Positions 28,201-50,500 of a stretch of DNA of 64,000 nucleotides are shown here, one piece after another (position 1 is the stretch's first letter; each line of letters begins with the position of its first letter). Source of the DNA: Salpingoeca rosetta (Eukaryota; Protista; Choanoflagellata); NCBI GenBank assembly GCA_033442325.1, contig JAWQFM010000011.1:784331-848330 (forward strand), written 5' to 3'. The notes beneath the pieces were generated by a model. That model ran no database searches, had not been told where the DNA came from, and was given only the letters and a program-made list of their open reading frames with translations. The position numbers and the translations under genes are program-made.

Positions 28201-30374
28201 GTCAGAGGTGAAGATTAGCCGTTTCTCGTCGCTCATCACTGCCATTCGGGAGCAGCTCACCATGCAGCTGGACACGCACGTGGACCAGAACATCAACGCC
28301 ATTGTGGACGCGTTCATGCAGGACAGGCTCAAGGATGTGGAGCAGATGCTGCGATTGAAGCTCGTGCCTGCAGGCATCGCACACGCGCCACGTGCTCACG
28401 GAGCGGTGCCTGTCGCGGCGCTGCGAGAAGCCGCACCGGCGGCACCCGCTGCCACTGCTGTTGGCATCGACGATGACGACAATGACGACGATGAGGAGGA
28501 GCAGCAGCAGCAGCAACAGGAGGAGCAGGAAGAGGGAAGTGCTTCTGCGGATGATAATGAGGAGGAAGAAGAGGACGGTGCGGAGTTGTTGTGGGGCGTG
28601 CGTGTTGTGGTTGACGGGCAGACGCTTGTGAGCGATTTGGGCACCAAGCTGACCGCTGTTGGCGAGGAAGTGCAGCAGGTGCTGCGTGATGCAACCTTTG
28701 AGGAGGGCGTTGTTGTGGAGGACGAGGAGGTGACACAGTGCCGCATCAACACCTTCCGCGACATCGGTGATGTGTGTGAAGTGCTGTCTGAGATCCACGT
28801 CGCGCTGGGCGACTATGAGCAGCGGTGCAGTGAAGCCCGCGCCCGCGCAGCCAACGCATCCCCGGCTGCCAACGAAACGTCTGCGATTGAAGGCGACCTC
28901 GACTTGCCGCATGACGACAACAGGACGAAGCTGCTCGCCATGCGTGACCGCATCCAGCAGCGGCGTCAGCAGCAACAACGTGCAGATGCTGATCCGGGCG
29001 ACGGTGGGACTCATGACGAGGACGAGATGGTGGATGAGGTGACCATCGCCACCAACTCGGCAGACACCTTGCGCCGTGCACTCGCCATCTGCCGCCAGGC
29101 CAACTGCGTTCGACATCTCACGTGAGTCTTTTTCGTATGTGTGTATGAATGTATGTATGAATACTTTCTTGTGCTTTCTTGTTTATGTGTGTGTGTGCTT
29201 TCTTGTGCTTTCTTGTTTGTGTGTGTATGTGTGCGTGTGTGCGTGCTTTCTTGTGTACGTGTGGTTTGCATACGTTGGCCGCTGCACTTGTTCCAAATTG
29301 TGTATTCTTGTGTCAGCTCAATCCGCCTCCTTGTTAATCGTCATCCTGAATGCCGTCAGGTTGGAGACGTGTGTGCTTGCGGACGTGTTGCGCGAGTTTG
29401 GACGCCTCTTCCCTGAAATGCGCAGGCTGCGCAGTCTTCGTCTGAAGCAGTGCGACCTTTCCGACAAGAACGTGCAGGACACACTTCATCTCGGCCTCCA
29501 GCGCAACACAACCATGAACACCTTCACGTGAGTCTCCCGGCTTGTTTGCATCCAATGATAGAGCGCACTTGTGTGTGTGTGTGTGTGTTCTTGTGGATGT
29601 GCGTGTGTGTGTGAGTGTGTGTGTGTGTGTGTGAGATAGTGTGGATGTGCGTTTGCACATATTCGTGTTTGCGCCATTCGTTGGTGTGTATGTGTGTTAT
29701 GTTATGCGGCGCTTGTTTCGCCTTGAGGCTGACCCATCGCTATGGGTGTTGAAATACATGCGTGTGGCTGTTGTTGTGTTCAGGGTGCAAGACTGCGGGC
29801 TGGGTGGGCCGTCGTCTAAGCTGCTGCGAAATATCGTTTCTGTCAACACCACCCTCGACGAGATCATGTACGTTGACCGCTCATGTCTCAGGCACATGCA
29901 TCCGTTGCTATGTGGCTCTATGCTTGTGCTTTGCAGCTGTTTTGTTCCGTTGCACACGTTTCTCTCGCGCAACTCGCATCGACGTCACGTTGACACAATG
30001 ACCAATCATCCGCGTCGTCATCACCACCACCACCAAATATTCAACAACAAACCAACAGCATCAAGATGCCCTCGAGCGAGGCCGGCGAGTACGCGGCGGT
30101 GAAGGCAGCGCTGCACGACAACGATGTGTCTGCACTCGTACGAGCACTGTGCACAACAGAGGAAGTGGCGCAGGGTGTGCTGACCAAGTACGTTGATGCA
30201 GGCAGTCAGTGGGAGGCCGTGTCGGGCGACGTGCGAGGGTGTGCCAAGTGGGGAGAGCGGCTGACGCAGGAGCAGCGGGAGGCGGTGATGGCTGCTGGCC
30301 GCCAACGTGTCCCCATTGATCGCCAGAAGCGCAAGGCGTGGCGCGTCGACCACCGCATCTGCTTCCCCGCATGA
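25280..30374 (+). CDS. U-box-like domain + dynamin-superfamily (Mx/DRP-like) GTPase + helical stalk + RNI-like LRRs
   Basis: gccgccaccATG at 25280. In-frame exons 25280-25339, 25764-25794, 25965-26018, 26330-27083, ~27274-29121, 29360-29527, 29784-29867, 30059-30374. G1 VVGKESDGKS, G2 FPFRDNICT, G3 LVDLPG, G4 LSKTD. LRR LRSLRLKQCDLSD...LQRNTTM...VNTTLDEI. N-terminus ITCAVI-EDPVLYQSKYYERHTFEEWFTRLNGTVP. Confidence 0.85.
26866..26925 (+). repeat. 24-bp coding tandem repeat (LGKHRSxx), about 2.5 copies, inside the GTPase domain
   Basis: cttggcaagcaccgctc at 26866 and 26890; degenerate cttgccaagaag at 26914. Confidence 0.85.
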
Positions 30375-30757
30375 ACACACGCACACGTACATACACATAC
30401 AGTGGCACAGATGCACGTGTTGCGTGAAGGTGTGACTGCTGCGTCCTTGTGTCCGTGTGAGGTGATGTGTTCTGCATTCTGGTGCCACTGAGATAGATGC
30501 ACAGGCGCGTGCATATCATCTGTTTGTTGTCTTCCTTGAATATTTGTGTGAGGGCTTCTTGCTTTCGTTCAATGCTTTCCATGCTTGCTTGCTTGCATGT
30601 ATGCTGTTGTTACACGTTTTGCGAATACAGCGAACAACTGAAGGAATGCACATCTACACCGCAAGACGCTTGAACAGGGCTTTGGGGGGAGGGGGGGGGG
30701 CAAAGAAGATACAGCCACAAAACACACACGGGGACAACAAGGTGGACACTAGCCCGT

Positions 30758-47254: not shown

Positions 47255-47574
47255 CTTGTGGTTGGTTGGTGTTGTGTTGTGGTTGGTGTTGGTGTTTGTG
47301 GTGAGTGATGAGAGACAGGCAGCACAAGCAGCCGAAGCAAGCGCCACCAACAAGCATTGCATTCCAAACGTGGTCGTTGACAGCATTCCTCTTCGCAACT
47401 CCCAACGCAGTACAACGCAACCGGACAAACCCCTTCGGTGTGCGGATTGAAGGTCCTGTTCCGAATACTGTCAGAGACATCACAAAGTGTGGTGTGGTTG
47501 GTGCAGCCGACGACTTCCTGCCTGCTGCACTGCATTTCCACCAGCCAGCCAGCCAGCACTCTGACACACCCAAT

Positions 47575-50500
47575 ATGAGCGGCAGGGTGCAGCTTGCCAC
47601 GATGATTGAGGCGGCTGGGTTGATCCCCAGCACGGCCAGCCTCGTTCAATCCATCGCCAATGGCACAGCCACAGGGCTCGTCAAGTTAGTAGAGCCCATC
47701 CACCCATCCTACCCATCCACCCATCCACAACGTGCCTTCACCCGCATGAGTGTTGTGGTTTTGGTGTTTTGCACCACACGCGTTTTGTGCTTCCTTGTTT
47801 ATTCCTCACACTCGTGGGTGATGTGACTGTGTTTGACAATGGCATTGTATGGGAACAATCCGCCAGCTTCCAAGGGAGGCACATAGGAGATCTTGGATTG
47901 GAGGCTGTCATCCTCGCACTCAAGCACAGGAATTTCGTCGAGTGGCTCGAGTCAGTTTGTGTTCTTCAGTCTGTCCGGTTGACAGAGCAGCACCATGCAA
48001 TGTGCAGAAGCCATGTGTCTTGTGTATTTGGCGCAGCATCTTGCCGCGTCTTGCCGTCTCTTGCCGCCGCTTCCTGCGTCTTGTCGCCGCTTCCTGCGTT
48101 TTGCGGCGTTTTGCGGCGTTTTGCGGCGTTTTGCAGCGTGGTTGGTTGTTGTTGTCTCACGCGTTGTTTTCCCTCTGAACTCAATTCTGACTTTGCGTTG
48201 GCACTGCAGTCTCACGGAGAACGACATTACGTCAGAGGGCGTGAGGGCACTCGTCACCGCCTTGACCAACAACCCCACGCTGCACACGCTCACGTATGTG
48301 GTGTGCATTCATCAGCGCGCCTGTTTGGCTGTTTGCCTGGTTGGAAAGGCTCCCGGAACCTTTTGCAGACATCTTTGTCCTTTCTGCCTTGTGACACCAG
48401 CACGTGCACATCGCAAACGCACGACACAGGTTAACGAACAACACCCTGGACGATGCCGCCGCAGAGAGCCTCGCCAACCTTGTGGAGACAAACACTGTCG
48501 TGAATGCCATATCGTGAGTGGAGAACGGAACCTTGCACGCACGTGGATGGAAATGCGCACGGGTGAAAGGGTGAATTAGTGTGGCTCCCAGAATTCATGG
48601 CTGTGAACGTGATTTGCCTGCGCCTGCATTTTGCACGCGTTCCTCACGTCAAATGCGTTGATTGCACATGCGCACAGGGTGTATGACAACCCCAACATCA
48701 GCCGTGCTGGCATTAACCGGCTCCGCGCTGCAGCAAACGCCCGTGACAACTTCACTCTTGGCGTGTACGTCCTCATGTTGTGTGTGTCTGTTGTGTCTGT
48801 GTGTCTGTTTCTGTGTGTGCATGCGTGGTGCATGTGTGCATGTGTGTGTGTGTTTGTGTGTAAGTGCGTTTGTGTGTCTGTTTTCTGTGCGTGCATTTGT
48901 GTGTGTGTGTGTGTGTGTGTGTGTGTGTCGCGGCACCGCCCGTTGCTCCATTAGTCCACAATGCTCGGCTAACGCTGTCTTTGTCCGCTCTGTCCCACAA
49001 CACCCCGTTGTTGTCGTTTTGTCATTAACCCGCCACATACAGGGATGATCCTGATGAAACCACACACACCCGGCACGTTCTTCGTCGCCACAACCACAAT
49101 ACCACGGGCAACACGCAGGCACACGACGACGACGACGACGACGATGACGACGCTGACGAGGATGTTCTACACGAAGCACAAACACCGATGTCAAGCAGGG
49201 TCTCACGCACGTCCATGTCATCACTGCGAACGCCTGATGCTTCCGGCGGTGCACCAGCTTTCACACTACCTCGCCACCGTCAGCCGCCACCACAACATCA
49301 ACAGCACCAGCACCAGCAGCAACAGGCAACAGCAGACCCAACCGTCGTGAACCAACTATGTACGTGACCACTCGTGACATGCTTGCTGCTTGTGTGTGTG
49401 TGTGTGTGTGTGTGTGTGAGTGAGTGTGTGTGTGTGAGTGAGTGTGTGCGTGTATGCATGTGTTTTCATGGGATTGTGCATGCCCTTCTGAATCATTGAC
49501 ACAAGCAAGTCTCACGTAACTCACTTCTGAAATGAACACTGCATACATGTGGTTGGTTTTCCTGCTGAACAGTGGACCAGCAGCACAGAATGCAGGAGCT
49601 CTTGGACGAGCGAGGTGTGGCTCTTGTTTGTGTGTGTGTGTGTGTGTGTGTGTGTGTGTGTGTGTGTGTGTGTGTGTGTGTGTGTGTGTGTGTGTGTGTG
49701 TTCGTCAGTTGTTGTCCCATCCTAATTGCGGATGTGTCTGCATGCAAACAGCCATGGAAGCTCGTGTTCCACGTGCTCATTTTCGTGCTGCATTGATCGG
49801 TCGGTTCTTGCAGACGCGACCATCGCCACGATGAGGGTGCAATTGGAGGAGCAGGAAGCAGCACAAACGCAAGCAGCAGCGGCCCTTATCAGCGAAAAGG
49901 AGCAGCTTCAAGGTGGGCCGACAACATGCGTGTGCCTCATCAACTCTGTGCAGAATACCTTGTTTCACCCTTTCGCTCTCGCACGCACACCACATAACAT
50001 CTGATACGCTCGCCTCGCAATCCTGCCCGCTTACTTGCCTGTCGGTTCTTGCCCCTCAACAGCGACAATCGCAGAGCTCACACAGACGAATGAGCAACGA
50101 GCAGAGGAGTGCGACCAAGCCAACGAGAGAAAGGCTGAACTCGCCCAGAGGCTGCAGACTGCCATCGATGAATTGGGTGCGCTTGCATGATTGTTTTTGT
50201 ATGTGTGTACGTGTGTGTGTGTACGTGTGTGTGTGTGTGTGTGCGTGTGTGTGTGTCTGTGTATGTGTGTTGTGGTACAAAAGGAGGGTCGTTTCGTTTG
50301 GATGACTTGTGGTTGTGGTGCACTGGGTGCATATGTCACTCGTCTTGTCACTCACGTTGGACTTTCGCGGCGTATTTGTGCGCCGCAGAATCGCTGAGGA
50401 GTGCACACGCCGACAGCGAGCAGCAGCAAACTGATCTGACGGAGCGCATCAAGGCAATGAAGGAAGAGATGGAGGACTTGCAGCAAGCAAAGGACGACGT

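Follow-up and report, generated by a model that had tools for sequence, protein, structure and literature searches.

A window of 64,000 nucleotides (nt) from the genome of the choanoflagellate Salpingoeca rosetta (contig JAWQFM010000011.1; G000:C11:784331-848330, where G000 is the 55.4-Mb assembly GCA_033442325.1) contains two genes in which small exons for leucine-rich repeats (LRRs) are found next to exons for enzyme domains. The first gene, PTSG_04477, codes for a dynamin-like GTPase, and the second, XP_004994575, for a protein with a kinase and a PARP-like domain. In both genes, a short LRR domain of the ribonuclease inhibitor (RI)/NOD type is likely to be built by a one-repeat-per-exon design that is widely used in S. 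rosetta, the architecture alone being common to the two. The DNA of the window has a G+C content of 52-60%, with GT-AG splice sites and introns rich in TG microsatellites. The two genes are not subtelomeric, since the window occupies 784-848 kb of a 1.85-Mb contig (C11).

The protein of the first gene was identified by a word search in which the long open frame at 27215-29122 served as query and which returned one protein, P0001, annotated as 'hypothetical protein PTSG_04477 [Salpingoeca rosetta]' with 1104 amino acids (aa). For the second gene, a full HMMER scan with its last exon revealed P0002 (1132 aa, 100% identical), which is named 'serine/threonine protein kinase [Salpingoeca rosetta]' (XP_004994575). 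These public annotated proteins were mapped codon by codon onto the window, with the additional use of tblastn, which resulted in 8 exons for the dynamin-like gene and 15 exons for the kinase/PARP-like gene. Searches were carried out with single exons and with the full-length database proteins P0001 and P0002, and not with spliced models of our own joining. Single repeats were scored with a position-specific scoring matrix (PSSM), which was applied in the repeat register set by the introns and compared to a null set of 1798 windows. All exons described below are located on the forward (+) strand.

In the dynamin-like gene, exon 5 (27274..29121) encodes the end of the GTPase domain, the stalk and an acidic stretch, and P0001 mapping places both its start and its end (..HL-T|) in phase 2. 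With the helical half and the first half of the beta-strand, its last ~23 residues make up part of an initial LRR-like unit, designated D0. Exon 6 (29360..29527; 168 nt, phase 2-2) codes for two degenerate RI-type LRR-like units of 27 and 29 aa, with no intron between them; its LxxCxL motif is kept in the ortholog P0086, and its PSSM signal is weak. Exon 7 (29784..29867; 84 nt, phase 2-2) codes for one RI-type LRR unit, D2 (VQDCGL...NTTLDEI), on the basis of the PSSM and of hhalign. The terminal exon 8 (30059..30374) has a phase-2 start at the repeat position shared with the other LRR exons, as derived from P0001 mapping and the PSSM; its first ~27 aa are weakly LRR-like and were assigned to a capping unit, D3, which is followed by a C-terminal tail conserved in the orthologs. 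The GTPase part was identified by Pfam as Dynamin_N (56.6 bits, with a cut-off of 27), and in the PDB the G domain matches those of Vps1, dynamin, Drp1 and Mx with E-values from 4.5e-11 to 3e-5. At the other end of the protein, the N-terminus (25280-26018, residues 1-55 of P0001) is conserved in P0086 and shows a weak likeness to a U-box/RING E3 (7c96_B, E=0.41).

The kinase/PARP-like gene starts with exon 1 (47575..47684), which contains the ATG, encodes an N-terminal helix common to the paralog family and ends in phase 2, according to P0002 mapping and the paralog alignment. It is followed by four LRR exons, all of them phase 2-2: exon 2 (47867..47950; 84 nt), mapped by P0002 and with a PSSM score of 20.1, above all null windows; exon 3 (48210..48293; 84 nt), which matches LRR_6 at profile positions 10-23 and also gives PDB matches; exon 4 (48430..48513; 84 nt), supported by P0002 mapping and the in-register PSSM; and exon 5 (48678..48764; 87 nt), placed by P0002 mapping and coding for a 29-aa unit. 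The latter exon was absent from the list given in a preliminary description of this DNA. Exons 6-13 (49043..51388) comprise an acidic/Q-rich linker, encoded by exon 6, which starts in phase 2, and seven coiled-coil exons of phase 1-1. Exon 14 (51636..52735) encodes a TKL-type protein kinase domain (Pkinase, 138.6 bits), and exon 15 (52988..53842) a C-terminal PARP-like domain with the stop codon (Pfam PARP, 18.3-21.1 bits). While this PARP score is under the cut-off of 26.7 bits, a related ROCO gene passes it at 33.9 bits.

Two further features were observed in the kinase/PARP-like gene. The coiled-coil exons 7-13 (49573-51388), with lengths of 42, 99, 114, 159, 138, 81 and 45 nt, are all symmetric (phase 1-1) and represent a second frame-preserving exon series in this gene; with 110 gapped positions, the coiled-coil region is the most length-variable part of P0002 in comparison to its paralog P0084. 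Intron 2, located between two LRR exons, contains at 48039-48139 a 10/20-nt minisatellite with ~10 copies of the TCTTGCCGCG / GCGTTTTGCG type.

The LRR exons of both genes follow the same rule. All eight of the introns that flank them are in phase 2, and all eight split the x5 codon of the repeat LxxLx|LxxN/CxL. The split sites read HLT|LETC, TFT|VQDC and DEI|IKM in the dynamin-like gene and LVN|FQGR, WLD|LTEN, TLT|LTNN and AIS|VYDN in the kinase/PARP-like gene. The exons next to the LRR exons conform to this rule, as phase 2 and the position within the repeat also apply to the ends of those at 27274-29121 and 47575-47684 and to the starts of those beginning at 30059 and 49043. For the five LRR exons listed in the preliminary description, P0001/P0002 mapping reproduced the coordinates, the AG...GT borders, the lengths and the 2-2 phase, and the claim that all LRR exons are flanked by phase-2 introns at one position of the repeat was likewise borne out. 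According to the design proposed here, one 28-aa repeat would correspond to one symmetric 84-nt exon, with variants of 87 and 168 nt, bounded by phase-2 introns in the x5 codon. The kinase/PARP-like protein would thereby carry ~4 LRR units at its N-terminus, and the dynamin-like GTPase ~3-5 degenerate units at its C-terminus.

The assignment of these units to the LRRs had also been part of the preliminary description, and it fared differently for the two genes. The kinase/PARP-like gene carries true LRRs, as judged from its sequence: LRR_6 was identified in P0002 with 26.5 bits, compared to the curated Pfam cut-off of 23.4 bits, and exon 3 alone matches LRRC34, a designed RI-type LRR, rabbit NOD2 (5irm) and ribonuclease inhibitor in a PDB search. 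The units K1-K3 reached in-register PSSM scores of 18.6-31.2, above 1798 of the 1798 null windows. Pfam applied to single 27-aa exons gave nearly nothing, with one weak LRR_6 match. For the dynamin-like gene, no Pfam LRR family was obtained at E<=10, and D2 in exon 7 is the only unit that is clearly LRR-like in register.

The exon pattern is not confined to the window. Matching LRR_6 against the whole assembly resulted in 114 matches, of which ~45 start at model positions 10-12 in short open frames; model position 10 is the start of exon 3 of the kinase/PARP-like gene. A plain scan of the window for open frames between AG and GT was unspecific, with 75-225 candidates in every length and phase class, so that an LRR-pattern and a low-complexity filter were needed. 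With these filters, the window and 20 further loci (181 kb) yielded 157 LRR-like AG|exon|GT candidates of 84 nt in phase 2, whereas each of 14 control classes of other length or phase had 3-23. This confirmed that the observed exon pattern is real and beyond chance. The 84-nt phase-2 exons were mostly found as arrays in LRR-Roc-COR genes, with up to 11-12 units and introns of 150-200 nt, and next in these genes come Roc, COR, PARP-like or TIR domains and, in one case, ankyrin. Taken together with the N-terminal position in the kinase/PARP-like gene and the C-terminal position in the dynamin-like gene, the earlier view of an LRR module attached to different enzymes holds genome-wide, with Roc-COR, PARP-like, TIR, kinase, ankyrin and dynamin-like parts.

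The genes of the window share with the S. rosetta LRR-Roc-COR(-PARP-like/TIR) arrays the 84-nt phase-2 exon, the register (L1..L27, with the split x5 codon) and the C-terminal family of PARP-like domains. In contrast, these arrays consist of 6-12 near-identical units separated by introns of 150-200 nt, whereas the window genes have few and strongly diverged units and other effector domains. Within the arrays of the other loci, the ratio of nonsynonymous to synonymous substitution rates (dN/dS) was 1.14 for x positions on the beta-strand face, compared to 0.31 for the remaining positions, with a position set that was partly picked after the variability had been seen. At two of the loci, arrays or genes were found in tandem. 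In L014 (G000:C13:1699-1708k), the genes lie head to tail, with an LRR array that begins within ~1.2 kb of the COR/TIR end of the preceding ROCO gene, and in L013 (G000:C9:1685-1694k) two head-to-tail arrays lie within 5 kb and have an identical last unit.

In animals, a precedent for one 28-aa LRR per exon had been named in the preliminary description and is documented in the literature: NOD and NLRC genes encode one such repeat per exon, while NLRP genes encode two per 171-bp exon, and the LRR exons of NLR genes are strictly frame-preserving, with the border always at one position of the beta-strand (Hoss 2019, PMC6642158). In zebrafish NLR genes of the NLR-B30.2 type, each LRR is also located on a single exon (PMC4852459). 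The window genes resemble vertebrate NOD1, NOD2 and NLRC3 in that each frame-preserving exon of 84 nt encodes a single RI-type LRR of 28 aa and has its border at a fixed place in the beta-strand, and the two-unit exon of the dynamin-like gene (27+29 aa) recalls the 171-nt exons of vertebrate NLRP and RNH1 genes, having 168 and not 171 nt. Unlike in vertebrate NLRs, the LRRs of the window are attached to a dynamin-like GTPase at the C-terminus or to a coiled coil, a kinase and a PARP-like domain at the N-terminus, the arrays are very short (3-5 units), and the host is a unicellular choanoflagellate. Pfam identified neither NACHT nor NB-ARC in P0001 (Dynamin_N) or in P0002 (Pkinase, PARP and LRR_6).

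In the literature searches, no paper was found that explicitly states the intron phase of the NLR LRR exons, and none on a one-repeat LRR exon design in choanoflagellates; the phase was taken from the Human Genome Variation Society (HGVS) numbering of NOD2. In this gene, c.2722G>C (p.Gly908Arg) is located in exon 8, c.2798+158C>T in intron 8 and c.3019_3020insC (p.Leu1007fs) in exon 11 (PMC8432186). Exon 8 therefore ends at c.2798, two bases into codon 933, which corresponds to phase 2. Assuming a length of 84 nt for exon 8, the third full codon of this exon is that of Gly908, and Leu1007 occupies the conserved position 18 of the unit. This placement of Gly908 and Leu1007 fits the L-x-G-N...A-L register of the rabbit NOD2 chain and of S. 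rosetta. The LRR introns of NOD2 thus apparently lie at the x5 codon of the S. rosetta genes, just before the L of LxGNxI, and in phase 2. In this indirect comparison of intron position, phase 2 was derived from the NOD2 numbering, and an identity of the codon is consistent with the cDNA numbering and the alignment to the rabbit protein. As phase and codon are apparently equal to those of vertebrate NOD2, the design probably predates animals.

A design with one repeat per exon is in itself already known, both from vertebrate NLRs and from the ROCO genes of brown algae. The exons of the brown-algal LRR-ROCO genes reportedly have 72 nt. The window genes resemble these genes of Ectocarpus and other brown algae in having one repeat per symmetric exon, a variable repeat number and putative receptor genes in which LRRs are joined to signalling GTPases (Zambounis 2012, PMC3341825; PMC11378527), and the direct counterpart of the brown-algal LRR-ROCO cassettes are the Roc-COR arrays of S. 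rosetta. The brown-algal type I LRR was modelled on plant PGIP and belongs to an LRR class unlike that of S. rosetta, and the term 'Phase 0' as used for these genes denotes exons whose length is a multiple of three and is not based on measured intron phases (PMC3341825). Unlike in brown-algal ROCO shuffling, the window genes have no near-identical exons (at most 42% nt identity) or co-duplicated introns, a feature that is present at other S. rosetta loci.

Several observations weigh against the reading of both genes as carriers of a short RI/NOD-type LRR domain in a widely used one-repeat-per-exon design that predates animals. The exon models are those of the public annotation, several other LRR_6 arrays of S. 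rosetta are located in long open frames, so that unsplit RI-type LRRs also exist, and the codon match was derived from NOD2 cDNA numbering and the alignment of the rabbit NOD2 protein, not from genomic sequence. Further points concern the dynamin-like gene. Pfam identified no LRR family in P0001, even at E<=10, nor in the transcriptome orthologs P0086 and P0087, and a hidden Markov model (HMM) of the canonical ROCO-array units gave E=0.07 on P0001; this model was too specialised to detect dynamin units or to count those of the kinase paralogs. The unit D1a in exon 6 had a background-level score with the in-register PSSM and was not significant, the hhalign probability for the match of D2 was just 1.2%, and an AlphaFold2 model of P0001 from the single sequence, with no alignment, had a mean predicted local distance difference test (pLDDT) score of 36 and was uninformative. 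It could thus be argued that the 168- and 84-nt exons do not encode a real LRR domain, and that the leucine spacing and the three phase-2 introns are coincidental or the decayed remnant of a domain without LRR function. Against this, D2 scored above 1798 of 1798 null windows and D3, D0 and D1b reached p=0.002, p=0.017 and p=0.05, in a register that is fixed independently by the introns; the LRR pattern is visible in all units except D1a. In the comparison of the LRR-unit profile to a three-sequence dynamin alignment by hhalign, the best match anywhere in the 1104 aa was D2, in register (P=0.044). Ten of the ten nearest named language-model clusters of the P0001 C-terminus are LRR families (LRR_6 clusters), and the non-dynamin PDB matches with any signal in P0001 were RI-type LRRs at residues 904-1031, which are weak (E 0.2 and 9.7). 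In addition, the ortholog P0086 keeps the LRR scaffold residues, and the two exons measure exactly one and two times 84 nt. Coincidence or a decayed remnant is considered improbable on this evidence, and the C-terminus of the dynamin-like protein very probably represents a short, degenerate RI-type LRR.

That the two genes have exon length, phase and repeat position in common could also be explained by exon shuffling, in which a mobile LRR exon cassette was recently copied or exchanged between them or came from a donor array common to both, a strong form of the shared cassette of the preliminary description. Recent exon duplication does occur elsewhere in the genome, as seen from near-identical exons and evenly sized introns in arrays. 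For the window genes, the sequences speak clearly against it. Between the dynamin-like and the kinase/PARP-like gene, the identity of the exons amounts to 23-40% at the nt and 4-26% at the aa level, which is about random, and the best exon pair within the window, with 42% nt identity, is found within one gene. By blastn, no significant match of the window LRR exons to the 20 cassette loci was obtained, and the introns of the two genes are alike solely in TG runs. In the comparison of P0002 to its closest paralog P0084, encoded ~170 kb away on the same contig, the four LRR units are collinear 1:1, with identities of 39% for the LRR, 73% for the kinase and 67% for the PARP-like part; the collinearity argues that the LRR was inherited with the gene by vertical descent. 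The LRR region has diverged faster than the enzyme domains. The dynamin units are likewise kept in position in the ortholog P0086. A recent cassette is therefore given hardly any credence and is close to refuted: the exons of both genes appear to be old and diverged, each from its own gene lineage, with no sign of recent exchange. The related proposal of microsatellite-mediated recombination found no support. TG/CA runs account for 6.8% of the window. The dynamin-like gene contains them in 6 of its 7 introns and the kinase/PARP-like gene in 6 of its 14, though in only one of the five that flank its LRR exons, and they show no specific link to the LRR exons. A different question is whether the match to NOD/NLRC introns, and possibly also that between S. 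rosetta families, is convergent, either by independent amplification of a founder unit or by repeated intron gain at a favoured site, in which case the design would not go back to a common holozoan ancestor. One LRR per exon has evolved independently in the brown-algal ROCO genes, whose exon lengths and LRR types are different (PMC3341825), unsplit LRR_6 arrays are present in S. rosetta as well, and neither window gene contains NACHT. On the other side, the phase and apparently also the codon are the same as in NOD2, the repeats belong to the same class (RI/NOD type, 28 aa), and choanoflagellates are the sister group of animals. Convergence is regarded as rather unlikely. With descent from a common ancestor, the x5 phase-2 intron would be inherited and pre-metazoan, and LRR sensors would already have been plugged onto a dynamin/Mx-like GTPase, a kinase with a PARP-like domain and Roc-COR with TIR in the ancestor shared with choanoflagellates, a scenario that is possible and is put forward tentatively.

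The kinase/PARP-like gene belongs to a large paralog family. HMMER searches with its last exon identified 82 proteins with the PARP-like domain at E<=0.001, 20 of them at E<=1e-30, and adjacent TKL-kinase and PARP-like exons were found at at least 20 loci of G000, which include C19:183-190k, C26:509-512k and 555-557k, C4:1819-1822k, C23:863-866k and C21:969-972k. Several of the PARP-like matches contain one in-frame TGA or TAG near the match end, which may mark an intron, a natural stop or a pseudogene. By eye, four LRR units were counted in P0002, P0084 and P0085, five in P0005 and P0007, and eight in P0013. The exon structure of the paralogs was inferred from isoform junctions and from the fact that their LRR parts did not match in long pieces. 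Two annotated isoform pairs, P0003/P0084 (C11:610-615k) and P0006/P0085 on another contig, diverge exactly at the LRR x5 codon, and the residue pairs R/M and R/L fit one shared third base, consistent with a phase-2 split. In P0006, the entire LRR region is absent. These pairs show alternative first exons that are spliced onto the cassette boundary, not skipping inside the array.

Two relatives of this family differ from the pattern. In P0012, a transcript of the sister species Microstomoeca roanoka, the N-terminus reads by eye as ankyrin-like in place of the LRRs, which would be a swap of a sensor-like repeat domain on the same enzyme chassis. At G000:C11:675111-675173 (-), an LRR_6 match covering model positions 4-24 lies within an open frame of 358 aa, upstream of the kinase/PARP-like paralog at C11:670-673k. 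The x5 position may be uninterrupted in this paralog, and intron presence and absence may thus differ within the family.

Since the LRR exons are symmetric, the gain, loss or skipping of a unit preserves both the reading frame and the register of the solenoid. Outside the window, this is seen in the long arrays of near-identical LRR exons of the LRR-Roc-COR genes and in the range of 4-8 units in the kinase/PARP-like paralogs. In vertebrate NLR genes, symmetric exons with one repeat each can vary the repeat number and produce splice isoforms, with the fold remaining intact. In the window genes, the LRRs may serve as binding or autoinhibitory sensor modules that control the enzyme they are joined to, in the manner of NLR and ROCO proteins; this function is one we purely infer, and as such it counts against the wider reading.

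The present analysis corrects the idea of a cassette common to the dynamin-like and the kinase/PARP-like genes. New are two further effector partners of the one-repeat exon design, represented by two diverged members, and the apparent codon-level match with NOD2. The partners identified in S. rosetta, namely Mx/dynamin-like GTPase, PARP-like, TIR and Roc-COR domains, are reminiscent of antiviral or cell-autonomous defence in animals. The value of the finding on the two genes is modest, and it yields testable candidates for cytosolic sensors in a genetically tractable choanoflagellate. If the common origin is true, a modular cytosolic receptor toolkit would predate animal innate immunity, and the exon design of the NLR sensors would have been present in the unicellular ancestor.

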